A DNA stretch of 63,571 bases, filler included, from Trichosphaerium sp. ATCC 40318 (Eukaryota; Protista; Tubulinea), in NCBI GenBank assembly GCA_038496445.1. It is 3 parts of 3 records of this genome, joined end to end, with 100 filler letters (N's around TTAATTAATTAA, not from the genome) between each part and the next. Parts side by side here need not be neighbours in the genome. Positions count along the whole stretch, not along the records: positions 1 to 22,441 come from JALMLS010000476.1; 2 more parts are not named here. One strand, 5' to 3'. This document shows positions 1,020-21,739 of this stretch, piece by piece; the stretch's first letter is position 1, and each line of letters starts with the position of its first letter. A program made the position numbers and the translations under genes. The notes under the pieces were generated by a model, which was not told the origin of the DNA, searched no databases, and saw nothing but the letters and a program-made list of their open reading frames with translations.

Positions 1020-1805
1020 ATGACTACAAAGACAAAATACTGTGCTTTCCCCTCAGGACACGTTACAATCAACGAAACTGCCTGTGCTTGTTTACTACAA
1101 CTGCCCACAGAGATATTAGCGCATATACTACGCCAAACCACCAAATCACGATTTACCGCTTCCCAGACCTGCCATTTGCTTGCATCTATCATCCATGATG
1201 TTATTGGCTACGACACTATCACTGTTAGAACTGTAATGCAAGCGAAATCAGTTCTACAACATCAAGGCATTCTCAGACATACTTATATCGTACTTTGCGG
1301 TGGTTGTTTTGATGACAATGTTATCAAAAAGTTTGCTGGCGTACACACTATAAATGTATCAACCACAAAAGTATCAAATGAAGGATTGAAAGCATTGGCA
1401 GGTGTACACACTATAAATTTGAAACGCTGTAATGTAACAGATGAAGGTGTAAAAGCACTAGCCGGAGTGCATTCTATAAACCTTTCTAGAACTTCAGTGA
1501 CGGATGAAGGTGTTAAAGCGCTTGCCGGCGTTCATACAATTGACCTTTCTTTATGTAACAATCTAACTGATGAAGGTGTAAAAGCACTTGCTGGTGTTCA
1601 TACCATTAGCCTTTCTCACACTTCAGTAACAGATGAAGGTGTTAAAGCGCTTGCTGGTGTTCATACCATTAGCCTTTCTCACACTTCAGTATCAGATGAA
1701 GGCATTAAAGCGCTTATTGGAGTTCACAATATGCAGCTTGTTTTTACTTCAGTAACAGATGAAGGTCTTAAAGCACTGGGGCCAAATCACACTGCAATTT
1801 TGTAA
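1020..1805 (+). CDS. F-box-like + leucine-rich-repeat protein (intronless)
   Basis: N-terminal LLQLPTEILAHIL..TCH F-box-like motif, then about 7 near-identical 24-aa LRRs (LAGVHTIxLSxTSVTDEGVKA). Confidence 0.8.
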   Translation: MTTKTKYCAFPSGHVTINETACACLLQLPTEILAHILRQTTKSRFTASQTCHLLASIIHDVIGYDTITVRTVMQAKSVLQHQGILRHTYIVLCGGCFDDNVIKKFAGVHTINVSTTKVSNEGLKALAGVHTINLKRCNVTDEGVKALAGVHSINLSRTSVTDEGVKALAGVHTIDLSLCNNLTDEGVKALAGVHTISLSHTSVTDEGVKALAGVHTISLSHTSVSDEGIKALIGVHNMQLVFTSVTDEGLKALGPNHTAIL

Positions 1806-9587: not shown

Positions 9588-10531
9588 TCAAATTAAGAAC
9601 AAGCACAAGATAGTGCCAATTACATAAATAATCAAAAAACCAACTGCTAGCATTAAAATGCAAACAAAATAACACCAACAATCCATAAGTATTGTGCGAT
9701 GATATTCTGCAATTAATTGACCGTTAATATCCCACTGTTTGCTCCATTCACATGTGCCATACCTGTTCATACACTTACACATCTAATTTGACCGTCACTG
9801 TACCATATCTTGTGCTCTCCATGCGGTTTACTTTTAATACAGCTATATTTTTTTTCTAATTGGCCATTTCTGTGCCATGCTTTATACTCTCCTTCCAGCT
9901 CCCCATCAACACGACAGTATTCCATGCGCAGCTGTCCATTATCATGCCACCCTTTGAACTCTCCTTCTTGTTTGCCTTTGATGTAATAACTGTGCATGGT
10001 TATTTTGCCATTATCATAAAAACACTTGTATTCTCCTTCAAGAAAACCATCTATGTAGTAACAATGCTGCTGTAAATGATCATTAAATTGATTCCACTCT
10101 TTGTATTCCCCATGAAGCACATCATGTTTGAAACTACACTCAGCCTAACGTATTTTAGTCACAAGAAATAAAGATCACGTGAACACAGGAAGTCAAAAAG
10201 GCAATATTATTTCGCAGCTGCGTTTATGGCCTTAAGTTGAGGTCATTGATGCTATCACTAGATTGGCGCTTGTAATTTTTTGCCATTTTACCTTACGATT
10301 GTAGTGGATAGAGTACTTATTTCGCTCACTGTCGTAGTAATACAAAATTTTGTTTTTTATCCACTTTCCATGTTTTTTTAGTTCATCGTCAAACCTTGTG
10401 GTTGTTGCCGTGTATTTTGATAGAAGAGGCCATTGTACATAAACTGCAAAGTCTAAATCAACTATATCAAGTTGTAGCTCAAGCGGAAGGTTCAACAGGT
10501 GACAATACTTTGATTTCAAAGCACTCATCAT
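9588..10531 (-). CDS. F-box-like + MORN-variant (YwqK-like) repeat protein with one intron, an apparent frameshift near 9780 and a C-terminal TM helix
   Basis: HLLNLPLELQLDI N-terminus; 147-nt phase-0 intron 10291-10145; GEYKxWxxNGQL repeats; hydrophobic tail in a shifted frame. Confidence 0.75.
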
Positions 10532-11258: not shown

Positions 11259-14200
11259 TTAAAGACTTGTACTTGTGTTGTCGTTAATAATGGTAACTGT
11301 ATCTCTTAGCACAGGATGAAGTGTTCTCAAGTAAGCAACAACATCATCACGTGTTCCTTCATTTAAAACAAAATCATGTCCGTCACAAGCATGACGTACA
11401 AACCAATCATGACACATCATTTCTATAATCTCTCCTTCCATATGCATTGTGTATTCTAGTATCTGTAAAAAGACATCAAGGCATTCAACACCACATTGAT
11501 GTTTTACAAAGCCTGATAAAACATATCCTTTCATTCTTTCGATTTGGTACTTATCACTTAACTTGTAAAGCATCCATAGAGTATCTATATCGTTTAAGGG
11601 AATGCTGTCTTTGTATAGATAATCCAATAAAAGGTTGACGACACCGAGAGGTTCACCAATTTTGATGACATTAGCATTCTTATCTGTTGATTGATTTGAT
11701 ATTAGAATTTGTTCAAAGAACGGTATGCGTGCTACTAAGATAACCTAATACAATCAGTTATTATATTACAATACTACGAGCAATCACAGTATTGGCGCTA
11801 GATAAAAAGAAAACTCGGATAAGCAAACAAAACAAAGAAAAAAAAGTTGCAAAAAGAAACAATGTACCTTGTGACACTTCAGTTCGTTGTCATCACTAGT
11901 CTTTAGAATTAAATCCTTTGATTCTTCATGCTTGTATAGTCTCTTTAAAGATCTTTTGATACCCTTCGAATTGATAAAGTAGCATCCAGGTTTGGTGCTT
12001 TGGATTTCTTTTACGAGCTTATTCGTTTTTAGTGATTGTAACAGTTTTATAAATGAAGGTTCGTCATCGTATTGAACTGATTTGCCATAAATACAAGAAA
12101 TAAGACAATTGAACGCTCTAGAAGAATGGTCAAGCTTCAGGATGGAATCTTTTTCTCCAGCGTCTACAAACAGTTCAGGCACTTGGCTCTCCACGAATAC
12201 CTAAAAAAAAGTAAGTTACACAATTTCATATTTTGCTTTTTTCTTACCCTGCTGATCTTAAGCGATGACTCTTGGTTTAGTTCGAACTCAAAGTCATTAA
12301 GCACTTCATATTTATCTCCTCTGAGCCTACTAAACTCTGATGGAATGATAGTAGCATCACTTAAATCAGGAAACAAGTAAGACTTAAATGACTTTCCAAA
12401 TCGAGTTTCAGGCTTCCCTTTACTCTCCTCAGTCTCCTCTTTCAAAAATGTGAGTATTTACATAAAATTAGTACTAGTGAAGTACCTTCACGTCTTGTCT
12501 TATAAGCAATTTTCTCAATTATGCGAACCAAGGGAAAGTGCAAATCGAACTCTGTTAGCGTGCCGCATATGAACATTACATTGTATCTTCCTTTATTAAT
12601 AGTCTTTTTCAAATCTTCAATGATGTGTAAGACAATTTCATCAACATCAGAGGAACCTTCAATAAAAATAAGCAAACAAAGTTATAGGCATTGATTGAAC
12701 TGATATCGATCAAAAGAAAGAAAAAAATAGGAATATTCTTGTATTGAAGTCTAAGGGTCCACAATCAAATTAAATTCCTTTTTGTTTAATTTATGGGATC
12801 AATAAGGCATGTTTTTAACGTACCTTTGTAGTGTGGAAACATTTTTTGGAATTTAACGAAGTTCTCAGGCATTAACTTTTTGAGAAGATCATATTTTGAT
12901 AAAACTACAATGACGCTGGCATGTGCTAACCCTTTACTGCTAATTTGTTCTGAGAGTAAAATTTTTGCTTTTTCGTATGAATTTGTTTGTGAATCTTCAC
13001 ACAACAAGTACATGAAGCTTGAGAGTTAAAGACAAAACAAAAAAAGAAATTCCAATAAAAATACAAGTCACAACACGAAACAACTATGGATTAGTGTCTT
13101 GTCTATGCCTTACTTGAATTCAAAAAAGATACTCGGTTAGTGACACCACATGGCAAATATAATGTACATTTCCAAAGCAATGTAACCATTTTCTCCATTC
13201 ATTTCGATGACCTTAATAAATAAAAACTTAGACCAACTGCAAAAAATAACAAAAGTAGCATAAGCCTTCAACAATGCCACAGCTTATAATAAAAAACTCT
13301 AATTTTAATAAACAAATACTAAAAGAAAAGTATTATTGAGTACAAAGTAACACGTGATAAGCCTGAGCAACAAATACTTTTAAAACTAAAAAAGACGTAC
13401 CACCAACATCCAAAAGATTAAACTGTTGACCATTATGGCCTAGGTACTCTTTCTCTACAACCCCTGTTGTCCATATACGTACATTCATAATTTCAGGTAT
13501 TGTTACTTCCCATCCTTTAGTTCTTTTTGCAACAGCATTCAATAAACTTAAAAGAAAAAGTTTAGTAAGAAAGTTCATTTTGTATTCTATTATCAGCTTG
13601 TATATCAACGCACATAGATAAATTATGCATAGGGCTATTGTACACAAGAGATTCTTTAAATGCAGTACATTCATCCATGAAGTCTGAATTGACGAGCCTG
13701 TAAAAATACTATTAACTTCTTTCTCAGAAAATTCTTTTTTTCTTCCTTTACGTACTTTTTAACAGCATCAAAACAAGATTGCTCCGAGTCGAAATTATAA
13801 TTGCAATTACACTTAGGATCGTCTGGATCCGATAGACTCAAAATAAGGGATTGAGTGCTCTAGTTAATTAATTAAACCAAATCAAATACCAGATCTTTAG
13901 CAGTAAGCCGTGCCTTCTTGCAACGACTAAAATAAGGACTTCGTTTAAATTCCTGTAAGCAATACCATATATGATGTGTAATAGCGAAGTTGTAATCTCG
14001 TCGGGCTTCTACATCTTCTTGAAGCAATTGTACGCAAAAATGCTTAACAAACGTAGATTTGCCTATTTACGTGACTGAATAAGCTAATAAACGCTTTTAT
14101 TTCGTGCTAACCGCTGAATGCCGATCCTGGTGTTTATTAGTTTCAAATTAAATAACTGACGCTGTTTGATACGCCTACCAAGTACTAGAATCGTGATTTC

Positions 14201-14305
14201 GTCTATCTCTAGTTTTTTCGCTTCAATTGCAGCTTTTTTGATAGATTTCAGTTTGCTAGCCTTATCCAGCCTGTTTACCGCTTGCTTACATTTTTTGTTA
14301 CCCAT
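11259..14305 (-). CDS. Heterotrimeric G-protein alpha-like subunit fused to C-terminal BTB domain(s)
   Basis: MGNKKC N-terminus; ILVLGSAFSGKST P-loop (via a 15-nt micro-exon); RIWTTG; LLDVGGHRNEWRKWLHCF; VLSKYD; in-frame splices continue into DLILKTSDDNELKCHKVILVARIPFF..LLDYLY (BTB). Confidence 0.82.
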
Positions 14306-16019
14306 TTCTGACTTGTAAGCGTTAAAACTGAAATAATTAAGATCTAGCCAATCTGTTTCACTTAATTGCTTTCTTGAGGCGCTTGGACTGTAAGCTTTTG
14401 GAAAAAGCAAGAGTTGATTACATTTGTTTACATAAATATGGGCTTAAACTCATTATCCGCAACAAAAAAATTACTTGTAACATGTTTCATCAAAACTCAC
14501 TATTGACCACTAAAATGGCCTTAAAACGATGTTAATTACCTATCACAACCATGTAAAAGTGCAATAAGCGGAATAAACACCAATCTGATACCCTGCTTAA
14601 CAATAGCGTAAATACGCACAGTATATGATTTTTTAGCGCCTAATAAACGTAGAATACCGCTTACAGCAACGTTTACAAGAAACCGTTACAATAAGCTAAC
14701 ACAGCTTTGTTGGCAAATGCTAATTCATGGCGAACGCCTCACACTTACAACCATGATTGAGATGGTTGAAAATAGCGCGCTGAGAAATATGCATGGGAAA
14801 ATTGTATTACTTTAACTCTTTACACTGTAACAGCTTAAAAAGTGACTCCTTTCAAGCAACACCAGCAATGGCAATTTCGAAATTTGTGAACCGTCCGATT
14901 TGAGGCCGGCTTAACTGCCCGGTGAATGCAGCTTCTCTTCAGCATATCTTTTATTTTACACCTTTAGGTTATCTCTACACTCTCCAGAGCCCTTTACGCC
15001 CATGACGGGCCCAAAGCACTCCTGCGCACACAGTTTAATGCTATAGCTCTGTTTGACATACTAAAGTACTTTTAGTCACACTGCTGGCCTTTCTTTTGTA
15101 TTTCATTGGTAATCTGATTTAATTCTCTATTCTGCTTTTACACGCTAAAATCAACTACACTAACTCGATTTTACCTTTCTCACCGCTTTTTAGCAATAAA
15201 CTAACTTCCTAAAGGAACACCTCACTATTTCTACATTTACGGCCACTGAACATGCTTGTAACTCAAACATTATTAGCAGGTAATGAAACTAGATGTCAAT
15301 GAAGATAGCAAGGTCAGATTTTTGAAATAATTTTTTTTTTTTTTTTTTTTTTCCTTTTCGTATAATCACGTGCGCAATGAATATGTTTCCACAAGTGTAG
15401 ATAGCTTTGCTATGAGGAACATTTCTTTTTTAGCTGGGCTGGACCATTTCTATATGCACCTGAGCAATACAGTAATCAAACGGATAGCAACAAATTGTCC
15501 ATGAAAACGTTAACCTCAGAACCATAATCAAATTGCTGACCATTAATAGAACATACGCATATGCCGGACGACAAGGTTGGTTAAAAAAAAAAATGTGCAA
15601 AAGAATAGAAATTGTTTTATTTTCATCTGTACGATTGGTTCTGTTCCATGACATGATGTCCTCCTGTAACTTTCTGTACACGCATGTCAATCTGTAAGTC
15701 GTCTTCCATGTAAACCCCCTATATGTAATAAAGTAGGCGCTAGCACGCTGCCTCTTGTTCTAAAAAAAAAATGTGAACCGTTCCGATTTCTGGTATTTTT
15801 TTAAACTCAAACGCACGCCCTTCCGTTAGACAAAAGTCTATGTGTAACTTTAATAATACGCAATATTGTTCAGTTGGATAAGCACTTTCACGAAGAACAA
15901 GCATAGTTCCAAAGAATACTATTAAAACATGTAGAACATCTGCTGTTTACTTGGTGCTGTCTTTATACTACGCTTTGAACAATGAAACATTTATTGTCCT
16001 GTTAACATTGCTCAAAAAT

Positions 16020-16140
16020 CTTGCTTTGTGAACGCAATGTTAATGCCAACCTTTTAAAACAATTTGCTGGAGTTCATACTATTCACCTTGATGACACTTC
16101 AGTAACAGATGAAAGTGGTTGGAGTGGATACTATTAACCT
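16020..16140 (+). pseudogene. Remnant of the LRR family
   Basis: Translates as NANLLKQFAGVHTIHLDDTSVTDE, then a frameshifted GVDTINL; matches the repeats of 1020-1805. Confidence 0.65.
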
Positions 16141-16487: not shown

Positions 16488-19400
16488 TCAAAGTGTGCCG
16501 GAAGCCTCTTCTGGTGGTTGAAAAAGATGATGGGATGGCGGGTATGGATATGGCCATTCTTTGTAGTCTTTTCCAAATACGAATGTACGTAACCATTCAG
16601 ACTCAATTTCATCACCATACCTACACAGTAGTGTTAGTAGTTGAGGCAAAAAAAAAAGTTGTGGAACTTCTGAAAAAAAAATCAAAATGTTGTGTTTTCC
16701 CTTTGCTCTTTTCCTTACCTCTTATAGTTCTCTGGTAATTTACCATAGTATATTTCATCTCCCTTACCAATATATTTTGGATCAATATATACTTGACCAT
16801 CTATAACAAAAAACAATGATAAGCAATCAACAAACACAAATCGAAAGAAAAAAAGCGAAAAAAAAAAAAAAAGAAAACATTTCTTACCTTCCAAAGAGTC
16901 GACAGTCTTCGCCATATCATGCATCCTTTTTATCATATTCTGCTTAGATGGCTCCTGAGACTCAAACATGAACGCCTCCATTCCTCCAGTATGTTGATCA
17001 TGATATACTGGATGAGTTTTAGAAATATATTCTAAGAACGCTTCTTTGAAACTATCTAAATCATATTCTTCTTCAGTAAACTTTCCTTCTTGTATACCCA
17101 TCTCATAAAGTTCCTCAAGTTGTTCATCATCACACGTATCAAGATCACCCTTATAGTGCAAATACTCGAAAGGTGTTGAATCAAGACGATCACCAAGACT
17201 CTTAATAGCTCTATTCTCAAACCAAGGTGCAACAAAATCAGGAGGAGGTAGTTCACTCAAACCAAGACTTTTAAGATAAACATCTTCCTTAAACTTTTCT
17301 TGTCGTTTACGTGTCTCTTCATCTACAGGCTTATCCTGCTCTTCAGGGTTTATAGGAGCTTCCTCAACATACTTACGCATAAGTTCTGCTTGTTTATACA
17401 TTATATCTTCCTCTGTAAGACCTGTCTTATCGATATACCAAAAAGAATTAGGGTCATCATATTTAGCTTCCTCAGCTTCAATTAACTTTGGATCCACTGT
17501 ATCTTCTACCACTTTTTCTTTACGTGGAAAGTCTTCATAATAACGTGTTTCACCATAAGATGTTCCTTTAAATTGTCGGCTTGATTTCCATAGTTTTGGT
17601 CCGTCTACACGTGGGAATATATGGTATTTTTGTTCAATAGCTAAGAGGGAAAAAAGTGGTAAGTAAAAAAAAAATAAAAAACTGAAACTTTTTTTTGTTG
17701 TTGTTGTTTTTTCGTTTGTTGTTCACGTACGCATAGGGAAATGACCTTGTTGTCCGACAATCTTTGATTTATCATAATGCCAAAATTTGAATTTCTAATA
17801 TTTATGTATAAGTAAAATACAAGGATAGAGTAAAGAGCACAAGCACATTAACATTAAATGTAACAACGACAAGAAAAAAAAATTCTTCAGAAATCCCCAT
17901 CGTTTAAAATTGTAGTGCGCATATTATTATCATATTTACGCAATATTCATAAAGTATTTGCATTGGTGTAAAGTTGTTTAGCTCACTTTAGTGGAACCTC
18001 ACAAAAAGAACAAAACAAAAAAGAAAAAAAACAAGAAAAAAACAGGAATACATACCAACTTTGTGTTACTACTCCTAGCACTTCTACAGTATTGATTGAA
18101 ATCATACACAAATCTATAAAAGAAATAATTAGTATCTTCAAATAATAAAATAAGGCAATACGCGTTGCCTAGAACGACTAAAAAAACAGTATCCAAAAAA
18201 AAATAACTTACGTGTCAAAAAGATGTGTATACTCTTTAGCATCGTTTTTAGATAAACTAGTAATCATACCGGCTGGGCTGACCTTAGCTGGAGTAACTGT
18301 GAACAAGAAAGGCACCCATTTATCTTTTTCCTCTTCACTGACGCTCTAATAAACGTTAGACAAAATTCCGATTTCTTTTCTGTATTCTTTTCCAAATCAA
18401 AGAAAAAAACTGCTCTAGTGTACCCCAAACCAAATTTTTGCTTGAAACGTTATCTCATCTGGATAGTCCATTTGAAACGTTACTAATTAATATTGATTAA
18501 TACGGAAAAGAAGAAAATAATAAAGAAGAAATTCTTAAAAAACTCGAAGAAAAAAAACTTACCACAACCGTAACCCATTTCTTCTATAGATAATAAAGTT
18601 GATATCTTTTGTGGGTCCAAAATAGGACTCATTCCGCCTATAGTGAACTCACGGAATCTAGGCATTATTTGTACAAAGTCTTCTAATATATTAAACGCCA
18701 ATGGCGTTTTGAACTACAAAAACAAGTTGTTAGTGACAAGAATACTATTTCACAAATAAAAATTCTGTTCAAGTTGAGAACGTACTTCATGGTTTGCAAA
18801 TCCAAATATTTCACCAATATAACGATATACCACAAGAATACTTACAATAATTCCCCCTTAATTTAAAAAATTCAGCATAAACCCTCATGTACAAAAGAGC
18901 TTAAAGATTTTCGAAAATATTCAAAAATTTAAAAAAAAATTACCTATTGTTACAATTACCCAAGCAATACCCATCGCAGAACCACCACCGAGTGCAGGAA
19001 TCCTTACATTCTTTGTCATCCTTCTCATGAAAAAAGTTGGTGCCCATTTCGCACGGACAACAGCACTTCGTGCTAGAGCTCTATCACCATGAAAGAACCA
19101 ATCCGCAATTAATCCACGAAAATATAATTGAATATTCCTTTTTGTATTCTTGATAGGCTGAAAGACAAACCTACTGATTACACCTGGTTTTTTCTTCTTC
19201 TTCTTCTTCTTCTTAGGCATTTGACGTGCAGTTATAAGTTTAGGTTCAGGAAGTGAAAGAAGAGTTCTGACTCTTTGTTTTAAAGTTGGTGTATCCAAGT
19301 TTGCCAGAATACCTACTATCTTTTCTCTAGCCTCTATTGCCCAACTATCATTTGAATGAATTTGAGATGCATAGTATGTAAGTAGGTCATTTCTACTTCT

Positions 19401-21739
19401 AGAAAGCAACTTCTTTACTAAATTCTGTTCTTCTTGTTCTCGTTTGTAAGCAATTCTGTCAAGCTTAATCATTTCTCTCATATAATCACGCTTTGATATG
19501 TATCCAATATCTTTCAAGTAATACATCTCACCAGCAGCGTATCCAGATTCAGCAGCTTGTGGAGGGGTTATCCATTCATGCCTAGAGAGCACTTTATTAG
19601 CAAAGAAATCAATTGAATTACAAAAAAGAAGAAAAAATTACGAAAGAACAAGTTCAAAAAGAAATATCCTTTCCCGCTCTAAAAATGCTAACTATTATTT
19701 TTCTTTCGATATTTCCTTTAAATACACACTGTAATATACGTAGCATAGCCAAATTTAAAAATAGAGCGTCAAGTGTAAGAATTGAGTTTACAAAAAAAAA
19801 AATAGAAAAAAAGCAGTTTCGATCTGTTTTTAGACATACCACCAACGATAGGCATCAACACGTGGATTGACATCTAACACATGATCATCCGCTACATCAT
19901 GTAATTGACCAGTTCTTAACCGAGCAGGTTTTCCGAGAGGAGTAAAGACACCAAGTGCACGTCTCATCTGACGGAAAGGTTGAATAATAGGATTAGGTAA
20001 ACCCAATCGACGGAATATTGTATCATCTCTTGGTGGCACATTTCTGAAATATGTTGGGTTCTGTAATAAACCAAATCGTTCACCAAGTGTAGGATTGTCT
20101 AAAATACGAAAAAGTCAAAAAACGTGCACACAAACGCGAGTAGAATAAAAAAAAAAAGAAAAAAAAAAAGATCTTCAAATAATAATATGACGTACATATT
20201 GGAAGCGTCTGCAATTGATTGTACACATGCCACTTTTGCATTATATCACGAGGATGTAATGGATTAAGATCCATCTTATTACCCATTTCATCAACTCGAG
20301 GTTGAAGTACATCTCGTCTTATACGCTGTATCTCAGCATAGTGACCTGTCTTCATCCTAAACCATTCCACTTCACGATCTAATAAAAAGCCATGGATTTA
20401 GTACAATTTTACATAGTAATAATCGCGTAACTAAACAACAGGGACATTGGTAAAGCAAGATACAATCAATGTTAAGGACAGTTTTTCGACTGAAAAAAAA
20501 AAAGAAGAAACAACACAAACAAAAATTATTGTGACAACTTACCGAAAATCTCCGGATACTTCCTTCCAAGAAGATATTTTGAAGGATCTGTTATCTTTAC
20601 ACCATGCTCCAAAAAAAAATCTTGTGTTTGTTTAAACTCTTCTGGAGATTTCCATTGTGAAGCTAGACAGAACAGTGTTAAGGGTAATGACTTCCAATAA
20701 ATAATGATCTTAATTCTTACGTGGAGGTATCATATCTTCTTCTTCTGCACCCTCACCCTTTTCTGCCTCTGTTGCTGCAGCATAGTATTCACGTATACCA
20801 TCTTGAAGGCCCTACAAGGTATTTAAGGTTGATTTAGGAAAAACGCTTTAAAATCGCTTAAAATCGTTTAAAATATGCACTCTGAGCGTAGTCGCTACTA
20901 TTTATGCGTGTTGCGTGTGCTAGAGCATTAATCTGATAAAATACGTTTGGACAAACACGAAAAGTCAAAAATGCTTCGTGCGCCATTTCCTACTTACATC
21001 TTCATCTTTTTTTAATCGTTCAGCTCTGGCATCCATAAACTCTTCAGTCGCGTGGGAACCAGTTTGAAACTCTGAATTCCATTCTGCCTGCTTCTTTTGC
21101 GATTCAGGCTAGTTCATACGTGAGATCAAAGGCGAAATAGCGGTATAAAAGGAGAAATAATGTATACATCGTCATTCACTGCGTATCGCTTTGCTATTGG
21201 CTCTCTCGCTCCAAATGATCCATGTACTCCAGGTTCATCGTAATCCATGTAATTTGTTAAACGTGGAAGGTCAGGCTCTGGTTTGAACCCAAACTCAGCT
21301 TCCATCTCCTCTTCCATCCTTTTTCTAGTCTCCTCATCCTTTTTTCTGGTATCCTCATCAACGCCAGCGTTCTTTTCTTCGCCTTTATTGTTTTCGTTGT
21401 TTTCTTTGGGTCCATCGCAATACCGTCGTACATGGCTATTAGAGGTTGAATGGTGAGCGATTTAATGAAGTTTGGCAGGAAAGTATACAATTAACGAACA
21501 AAAGTCGCGTACGGTGGTAGTGCATTATGTAATGTAGGCTTTCGTATCAATAACCCGCCTGAACGAGAGCGTAGAATACTGTTTGTTTTTTTAGTGGTTG
21601 CATAGTATCTCTGAGTGCTAAGAGGTTAGCGTAAAATAGCTTGGACAGTAAAATAGCTTTTCCATGCCTTTGATTGCCTAGGGGCGTAATATTGCTTGCC
21701 CCTAACAAGGTACGTAAGCCTCGTTAGGGCTCTCGACAT
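16488..21739 (-). CDS. Large multi-exon, probably mitochondrion-targeted hypothetical protein
   Basis: Basic MSRALTRL..QRYYATTKK presequence-like N-terminus; many co-oriented exons with GT-AG boundaries; a hydrophobic segment and an acidic C-terminal region; no family recognised. Confidence 0.65.

Follow-up and report, generated by a model that had tools for sequence, protein, structure and literature searches.

In this work we describe a predicted gene of Trichosphaerium sp. ATCC 40318 (assembly GCA_038496445.1), located on the minus strand at 14305..11259 of a stretch of DNA of 63,571 nucleotides, filler included, which as a whole is called the window below. Judged by sequence, the N-terminal ~347 residues of the encoded protein are a highly divergent heterotrimeric-G-protein alpha (G-alpha) domain, while the C-terminal half is modelled as a tandem BTB closed by a helical tail resembling BACK, as in substrate adaptors of Cul3. 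The catalytic Gln of the G-alpha domain is replaced by His. We propose, with a confidence evenly divided between acceptance and doubt, that this is a membrane-anchored G-alpha-like domain which binds GTP, hydrolyses it poorly and regulates or targets a Cul3-type adaptor, and which would thus be a G-alpha counterpart of RhoBTB. Poor hydrolysis is suggested because the residues for fast hydrolysis and pocket closure are altered, while those contacting phosphate, Mg2+ and base are kept.

Gene structure and splicing

The model comprises 12 exons with junctions set by script. Removal of all 11 introns (GT..AG, 47-189 nt long) leaves a single open frame of 2055 nt, i.e. 684 codons, with zero internal stops. 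The exons are as follows.

Exon 1, 14305-14179, minus strand: ATG at 14305-14303, MGNKKC.., N-terminal helix, ending with ..ILVL and the first base of G43; covered by the X4 contig 14178-14310
Exon 2, 14126-14112, minus strand: micro-exon of 15 nt encoding (G)SAFS(G) of the P-loop; present in the overhang of the X4 contig
Exon 3, 14062-13890, minus strand: Walker A (G)KST, then the first portion of the helical-domain region; 5' boundary supported by the X4 contig
Exon 4, 13811-13756, minus strand: helical domain; boundaries uncertain, picked by frame and G-alpha resemblance, without read support
Exon 5, 13697-13614, minus strand: helical domain; boundaries uncertain; the Pfam G-alpha match of the open reading frame (ORF) 13333-13674 begins here
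Exon 6, 13546-13401, minus strand: linker 2, switch I V-R175-I-W-T178-T-G, beta strands, L-L-D198-V-G + g
Exon 7, 13211-13133, minus strand: switch II, (G)HRNEWRKWLHCFGNVHYICHVVSLT; matched by phmmer in the PDB
Exon 8, 13017-12824, minus strand: switch III EDSQTN-S240, alpha3, beta5 and G4 S267-K-Y-D270 (12899-12888); matched in Pfam, PDB and ESM Atlas
Exon 9, 12656-12486, minus strand: G5-like F-I-C322-G-T-L-T and an alpha5-like helix, then an acidic linker; read by position only
Exon 10, 12438-12248, minus strand: acidic/basic linker and the initial part of BTB1 (..LSDATIIP.., followed by an insert)
Exon 11, 12200-11868, minus strand: remainder of BTB1, linker and the first BTB2 strands; 3' junction supported by the X1 contig
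Exon 12, 11744-11259, minus strand: BTB2 core, BACK/3-box-like helices and the stop TAA at 11261-11259

The ATG of exon 1 is the first in-frame one downstream of an in-frame stop. Two of the remaining boundaries depend on the model, namely the 3' boundary of exon 3 (20 open-frame options) and the donor of exon 7 (18 options).

Contigs of RNA reads from the runs X1, X2 and X4 fall over exons 1, 8, 11 and 12 of the gene. Those of X2 are identical to the window, while those of X1 and X4 diverge from it by 1-7% and stem from a different strain, species or copy of the gene, called here the related sample. The gene is transcribed and spliced at the three junctions covered (exons 1/2, 2/3 and 11/12): the X4 contig extends beyond exon 1 with an overhang equal to the reverse complement of the micro-exon and the first 16 bases of exon 3, and an X1 contig lacks the intron 11745-11867, spliced exactly as modelled. 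An earlier claim made from the DNA, that the P-loop is assembled through a 15-nt micro-exon, is therefore borne out, as the X4 contig joins exon 1, the micro-exon and the exon with GKST.

A single fused product is favoured because the BTB half contains zero Met between residues 319 and 581, the gap between exons 9 and 10 is 47 nt only, and the gene forms a compact unit of its own, since a spliced transcript of the opposite strand begins ~650 nt upstream of its ATG.

The His at the catalytic position and the other G-boxes

In exon 6 the coding sequence ends with ..L-L-D198-V-G + g (13401), followed by the donor GTACGT, and exon 7 opens with gt cat cga.. at 13211, behind the acceptor ..ttattaag. 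The join reads G201-H202-R-N-E-W-R-K-W, so that DVGG is followed by His202 (CAT, 13209-13207, minus strand) in place of the catalytic Gln of DxxGQ; in the phmmer alignment of exon 7 with PDB sequences His202 falls on Q209 of Gq. Alternative splicing offers no return to Gln. The preliminary description had named a different acceptor restoring this residue as grounds for giving up the His, and enumeration of open-frame GT..AG combinations at the exon 6/7 junction found none that does so (0/8): the options with the 13211 acceptor all read H-R-N-E-W, the remaining ones remove that stretch, and CAT is genomically contiguous with the RNEW codons.

The P-loop, G43-S-A-F-S-G48-K49-S50-T51, is built from the last base of exon 1 (14179), the 15-nt exon and exon 3 (from 14062), and has the Walker A form GxxxxGK[ST]. 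The X4 overhang differs from the window in one of the 30 reported letters, a synonymous change (ACG>ACA, Thr51) which leaves the protein sequence of the P-loop unchanged. Skipping of the micro-exon in silico keeps the frame, gives ..ILVLGKSTF.. and destroys Walker A (GxxxxGK), which agrees with the earlier statement that in-frame skipping would remove the P-loop; no such skipped form was seen among the RNA contigs.

Switch I, V-R175-I-W-T178-T-G, has both the catalytic Arg and the Mg-binding Thr of RxxTxG. Aligned by phmmer, G4 (S267-K-Y-D270, 12899-12888) lies under NKQD of Gs, with Lys and Asp retained and the Asn of NKxD gone, and Ser240 of switch III lies under R265 of Gs. At the G5 position I-C322-G-T stands for TCA[TV], by position only and without profile or PDB alignment. 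The alpha5-like helix does not end in a free C-terminal tail but runs on into the linker and BTB domains. The four motifs of the preliminary description (DVGGH, GSAFSGKST, SKYD and RIWTTG) were all found where it had placed them, and the phmmer alignments of exons 7 and 8 agree with the reading of DVGGH and SKYD.

Taken residue by residue, the retained ones are Walker A G43xxxxG48-K49-S50-T51, R175, T178, D198xxG201, K268 and D270. Five G-box or pocket residues are altered in total: the catalytic Gln to His202, the Gly equivalent to G42 of Gi1 to Ala45, the P-loop Glu to Phe46, the switch III Arg to Ser240 and the G4 Asn to Ser267. The roles of the catalytic Gln and Arg, of G42 and E43 and of the switch III Arg were drawn from a preprint (10.1101/795088), in which GAGESGKS is said not to vary among animal G-alpha and AtGPA1, substitution of the catalytic Gln (Q204R), as well as R178C, abolishes hydrolysis, replacement of Gi1 G42 lowers GTPase activity, and in AtGPA1 the P-loop Glu and switch III Arg are linked to the switch I Arg by a network of salt bridges. 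By analogy, Ala45 fits a second hit towards impaired hydrolysis, beyond the loss of Gln. Gs Q227H is listed as well, among the tumour variants of GNAS, a gene in which tumour mutations lower GTPase activity (PMC7382651).

His202 could nevertheless be catalytic itself, with hydrolysis taking place only when a partner positions it, a possibility which we regard as quite improbable. Translational GTPases use a catalytic His in a DxPGH motif. DVGGH likewise has the form DxxGH, and with the switch I Arg and Thr kept the remaining catalytic apparatus is present. Against this, substitutions at the same position of G-alpha and Ras-type folds are known as activating tumour mutations (Gs Q227H, PMC7382651) or abolish hydrolysis (Q204R, 10.1101/795088), the change of the P-loop Gly to Ala argues against efficient catalysis, and an activating partner is without evidence.

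Class of the N-terminal domain

Pfam, PDB, protein-library and fold analyses were run exon by exon. The G-alpha profile PF00503 matches exon 8 (E 1.2e-8, 34.9-37.3 bits) and, weakly, the ORF of exon 6 at 13333-13674 (E 0.026, 14.1 bits), both relative to a cut-off of 48.8; the matches are colinear with the model, as they cover profile positions 134-193 (exon 6 ORF) and 222-282 (exon 8; 222-280 for the match with E 1.2e-8). A phmmer search of the PDB with exon 7 returned 331 sequences with E values of at most 10, and each of the 60 listed is a G-alpha chain or a construct with fused G-alpha; the best full-length match is Gq (E 0.009-0.012), with exon 7 residues 2-24 aligned on Gq 210-232. For exon 8 the best PDB match is Gs-alpha, residues 256-315, and in the ESM Atlas this exon falls into G-alpha clusters. 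Exon 6 gave no G-alpha match among PDB sequences. The portion of the domain detectable by Pfam or PDB sequence search is ~1/3.

Between T51 and R175 lie ~120 residues, the size of a helical domain, encoded in part by exons 3 and 4, which are without similarity and have uncertain boundaries. In Pfam, PDB and Atlas alike the G domain matches G-alpha and not Ras or Rho, so it is not of the Rho class found in RhoBTB.

The BTB half

BTB2 in exon 12 is recognised by the Pfam BTB profile at 27.7 bits, over the cut-off of 20.5, while BTB1 is matched weakly (E 0.057-0.075) and looks, as read by eye from the sequence, interrupted by an insert. In a fold of exon 12 predicted from a shallow alignment the BTB core has a predicted local distance difference test (pLDDT) score of 80-88. 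The top Foldseek matches of this fold are only Cul3 adaptors: SPOP BTB-BACK, KBTBD4, KLHL11-Cul3, KBTBD2-CUL3 and KEAP1, with a template modelling (TM) score of 0.60 over ~148/161 residues. Structure search in the Atlas returned BTB+BACK clusters and, more weakly, a RhoBTB3 cluster (TM 0.49).

An exhaustive HMMER search with exon 12 among 1.84 billion representatives gave 8 matches, none of them carrying G-alpha; they are BTB proteins of generic type, with E 3e-6 or weaker, together with two artefacts of composition, P0001 (NAM/WH1) and P0004.

Weighing of the evidence

Several results speak against the interpretation proposed here. No single exon reaches the gathering score of PF00503, and exons 3 and 9, which would hold the start of the helical domain and G5 with alpha5, show no similarity to any G-alpha detectable by Pfam or PDB search. 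In the exon 12 fold the helices following the BTB core have a pLDDT of 50-60 only, and the Foldseek E values are weak (3.6e-3 at best). No orthologues or paralogues were found by word-index search with exons 12 and 8, by the exhaustive HMMER search with exon 12, by two metagenome scans or by tblastn of the model against the window. The exon 9/10 junction, which creates the fusion, is uncovered by reads and has 84 open-frame options across the 47-nt intron. The modelled splicing agrees with RNA at exons 1-2-3 and 11-12, while the exon 6/7 junction and the His codon lie in the region 13097-14177, where there are 0 contigs in any run. To the same side belong an unspliced contig and two features of the related sample, a high rate of amino-acid change in the G-alpha exons and a frameshift in exon 1, all of which are described below.

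Some of these points would be accounted for if the gene model were an artefact, with G-alpha and BTB as separate proteins, or if the locus were a transcribed pseudogene. Retention of intron 9 (12439-12485, 47 nt) would lead to a stop after 15 codons and to a stand-alone G-alpha-like protein of 362 residues ending with ..CKYSHF, and the gene was not found in the protein libraries searched. An X1 contig, 12863-13096, is unspliced and runs from intron 7 into exon 8, which together with the frameshifted exon 1 contig is in line with such an explanation. We nevertheless consider this explanation unlikely: an uninterrupted frame of 684 codons emerges on removal of all 11 introns, splicing follows the model exactly at both checkable sets of junctions, a start codon is missing from the BTB half, which lies only 47 nt from the G-alpha half, and selection on the BTB exons is purifying. 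In the unspliced contig 10 of 151 nt of the exon part differ from the window, 7 of them changing amino acids, and its intron part is less diverged than its exon part, with 2 substitutions plus 2 indels of one base over 83 nt.

Comparison with the X1 and X4 contigs bears on a second and serious rival, a relic domain, in which the BTB half works and the G-alpha half is decaying or purely structural, a true pseudo-GTPase without nucleotide binding, like plant XLG2. For the G-alpha exons the proportion of non-synonymous differences (pN) is 0.047 and that of synonymous ones (pS) 0.061, i.e. pN/pS ~0.77, vs pN 0.006, pS 0.035 and pN/pS 0.17 for the BTB exons. The ~8-fold greater pN of the G-alpha exons is significant (Fisher p 1e-4 to 3e-4; p 0.001 with X1 alone), and pS is no different. 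In exon 1 there are 4 listed differences from the related sample, of which 3.5 count as non-synonymous by pathway averaging. Moreover, in the A6 run at 14234-14239 in exon 1 the X4 contig has seven A instead of six, a +1 frameshift which would bring a stop after K24; the extra A may stem from a true allele, from a paralogue or from an error in the contig. As far as such comparison of sequences allows, the data agree with weak constraint on the G-alpha half, which in the related sample is possibly in decay, while the BTB exons show the pattern of purifying selection.

Decay would also go with exons 3 and 9 being unrecognisable as G-alpha and with the five altered G-box and pocket residues, and XLG2 is a precedent for a G-alpha-like domain independent of nucleotide (10.1101/795088). 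On the other hand, in the window the frame stays open across 9 G-alpha exons, the Walker A Lys and switch I Arg, both lost in XLG, are kept here, and the P-loop protein sequence is identical between the two samples. The differences counted are few (14 and 10), the contigs possibly represent a paralogue, and the extra A is in a homopolymer of a contig with a depth of 4. On balance we find a relic domain rather unlikely, while still to be reckoned with.

Proposed function

Under the interpretation preferred here, of a G-alpha-like domain joined to a Cul3-type adaptor, the G domain may bind GTP, perhaps with quick exchange and very slow hydrolysis, and would be mostly in a GTP-like conformation or serve as a static binding surface. 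As alpha5 continues into the BTB half, insertion into a receptor would therefore be impossible. Instead, by analogy to RhoBTB, in which the GTPase domain gates the first BTB, the G domain may regulate or target the BTB/Cul3 part. The location could be the membrane, if Gly2 and Cys6 of the lipidation-type N-terminus MGNKKC are lipidated. Our inferences for this protein are that it binds nucleotide and hydrolyses GTP slowly, that it binds Cul3 and that it is anchored in a membrane.

The preliminary description had spoken of a naturally GTPase-deficient or pseudo-GTPase module. The first of these terms fits the literature on the catalytic Gln; a nucleotide-free pseudo-GTPase is less likely because, unlike in XLG, the nucleotide-holding residues are kept (Walker A Lys, Ser/Thr, R175, T178, DxxG and K268/D270).

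G-alpha subunits are normally free-standing, receptor-coupled switches. A bolder version of our proposal, which we put forward tentatively and hold to be more doubtful than probable, is that a G-alpha switch, GTP-locked or switched by a partner via His202, gates a Cul3-BTB ligase adaptor at the membrane; it would be an independent, G-alpha-based reinvention of RhoBTB within a protist lineage and the first G-alpha in an E3 adaptor. If true, a G-alpha-type switch would be tied directly to ubiquitin ligation and, together with RhoBTB, the combination of a hydrolysis-impaired GTPase with tandem BTB would have arisen more than once. With the catalytic Gln changed to His, the G42 equivalent to Ala, the salt bridge of P-loop and switch III lost and the nucleotide contacts kept, the domain may also be seen as a natural experiment on G-alpha binding vs hydrolysis. 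Its value is currently limited by its being a single gene with no known relatives.

Other features of the window

The following features were observed besides the fusion gene.

1020-1805, plus strand: ORF of 261 aa, complete within one exon, which has an F-box and behind it LRR_6 repeats (unit ..AGVHTI.LS.TSVTDEGVKAL..)
9767-10120, minus strand: ORF of 117 aa with MORN_2 repeats (Pfam E 3.6e-16)
14968-15600, plus strand: divergently transcribed neighbour of the fusion gene
16021-16137, plus strand: short ORF with ..FAGVHTIHLDDTSVTDESG.., an LRR unit as in the gene at 1020-1805
16715-17512 and 18921-19592, both minus strand: long ORFs of 265 and 223 aa, without Pfam match, one with a poly-Lys run

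The best relatives of the F-box/LRR ORF are MMETSP/JGI marine protist transcripts with 52-56% identity, followed by weaker ones, among them Clydonella and Stygamoeba in EukProt and numerous LRR proteins of planctomycetes. An animal origin, to which the Gs-like ED.QTN of the fusion gene had at first pointed, was rejected in view of these relatives, which speak for a microbial eukaryote and perhaps for Amoebozoa, although repeat proteins are weak evidence of taxonomy. The short ORF at 16021-16137 possibly represents a fragment, or one exon, of a second gene of this F-box/LRR family, and the two long minus-strand ORFs are probably exons of unannotated genes. In the divergent neighbour X1 and X2 contigs splice out 15108-15213 (GT..AG, plus strand), and the overhang of an X2 contig at 14968 finds its match at 14907-14917, a sign of another small intron. 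Within the part covered by contigs a long ORF is not obvious, and it may be a 5' untranslated region or non-coding RNA.

Comparison with known systems

In the literature searched we found no paper describing a fusion of G-alpha and BTB, and no relevant use of 'DVGGH' in G-alpha. The system most alike in layout is RhoBTB (RhoBTB1-3), atypical Rho GTPases and Cul3 adaptors of 611-727 aa, vs 684 here, which consist of a GTPase domain, linker, bipartite BTB1, BTB2 and a BACK/3-box-like end; the order of parts modelled here resembles theirs, with BTB1 apparently interrupted and the BACK/3-box-like end putative. At the position equivalent to G12 of Ras there is Asn in RhoBTB1/2 and Ala here, and RhoBTB2 retains GTP binding (PMC4931677). 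BTB1 of RhoBTB has two binding partners, Cul3 and the GTPase domain, of which the latter autoinhibits the adaptor (PMC4931677). Unlike RhoBTB, the present protein has a GTPase of the G-alpha class, with an insert of helical-domain size and the switch I Arg. RhoBTB was not among the matches of the exhaustive search with the C-terminal exon, which holds BTB2, so that this search gives no ground for a shared ancestry of the BTB halves; the likeness is probably one of layout, and convergent.

Plant XLG1-3 share with our protein the fusion of a G-alpha-like domain to another region and the replacement of the catalytic Gln (Arg/Lys in XLG, His here); the Gly equivalent to G42 is replaced and G5 is changed in them as well. 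XLGs are proposed to act largely independently of the nucleotide cycle (10.1101/795088). They have Glu in place of the switch I Arg and are without the Walker A Lys, whereas both residues are present here. Their extra region is an N-terminal Cys-rich extension, not a BTB, and their G-alpha C-terminus is free; here a short MG.. helix comes first and BTB is C-terminal. With R175 kept and no such extension, the protein does not have the features that define plant XLG, i.e. loss of both catalytic residues, Arg and Gln, and a Cys-rich N-terminus.

Among canonical G-alpha the nearest in the recognisable exons are Gs and Gq. Common to them and the present domain are MG.., Walker A, RxxTTG, DVGG,.K.D and.C.T, the switch II pattern ..R.E.RKW.HCF..V and, as in Gs, ED.QTN of switch III. 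The differences are GAGESGKST to GSAFSGKST, Q to H, N of NKxD to S, TCAT to ICGT and the switch III Arg to Ser, and the free C-terminal tail of canonical G-alpha is missing here. The oncogenic mutants of Gs Q227 and of Gq/G11 Q209 are substituted at the identical position, and Q227H has been recorded for GNAS in tumours (PMC7382651). Those mutants, however, are somatic and affect otherwise canonical proteins, whereas here the His is encoded in the germ line and is accompanied by several other changes of the pocket.

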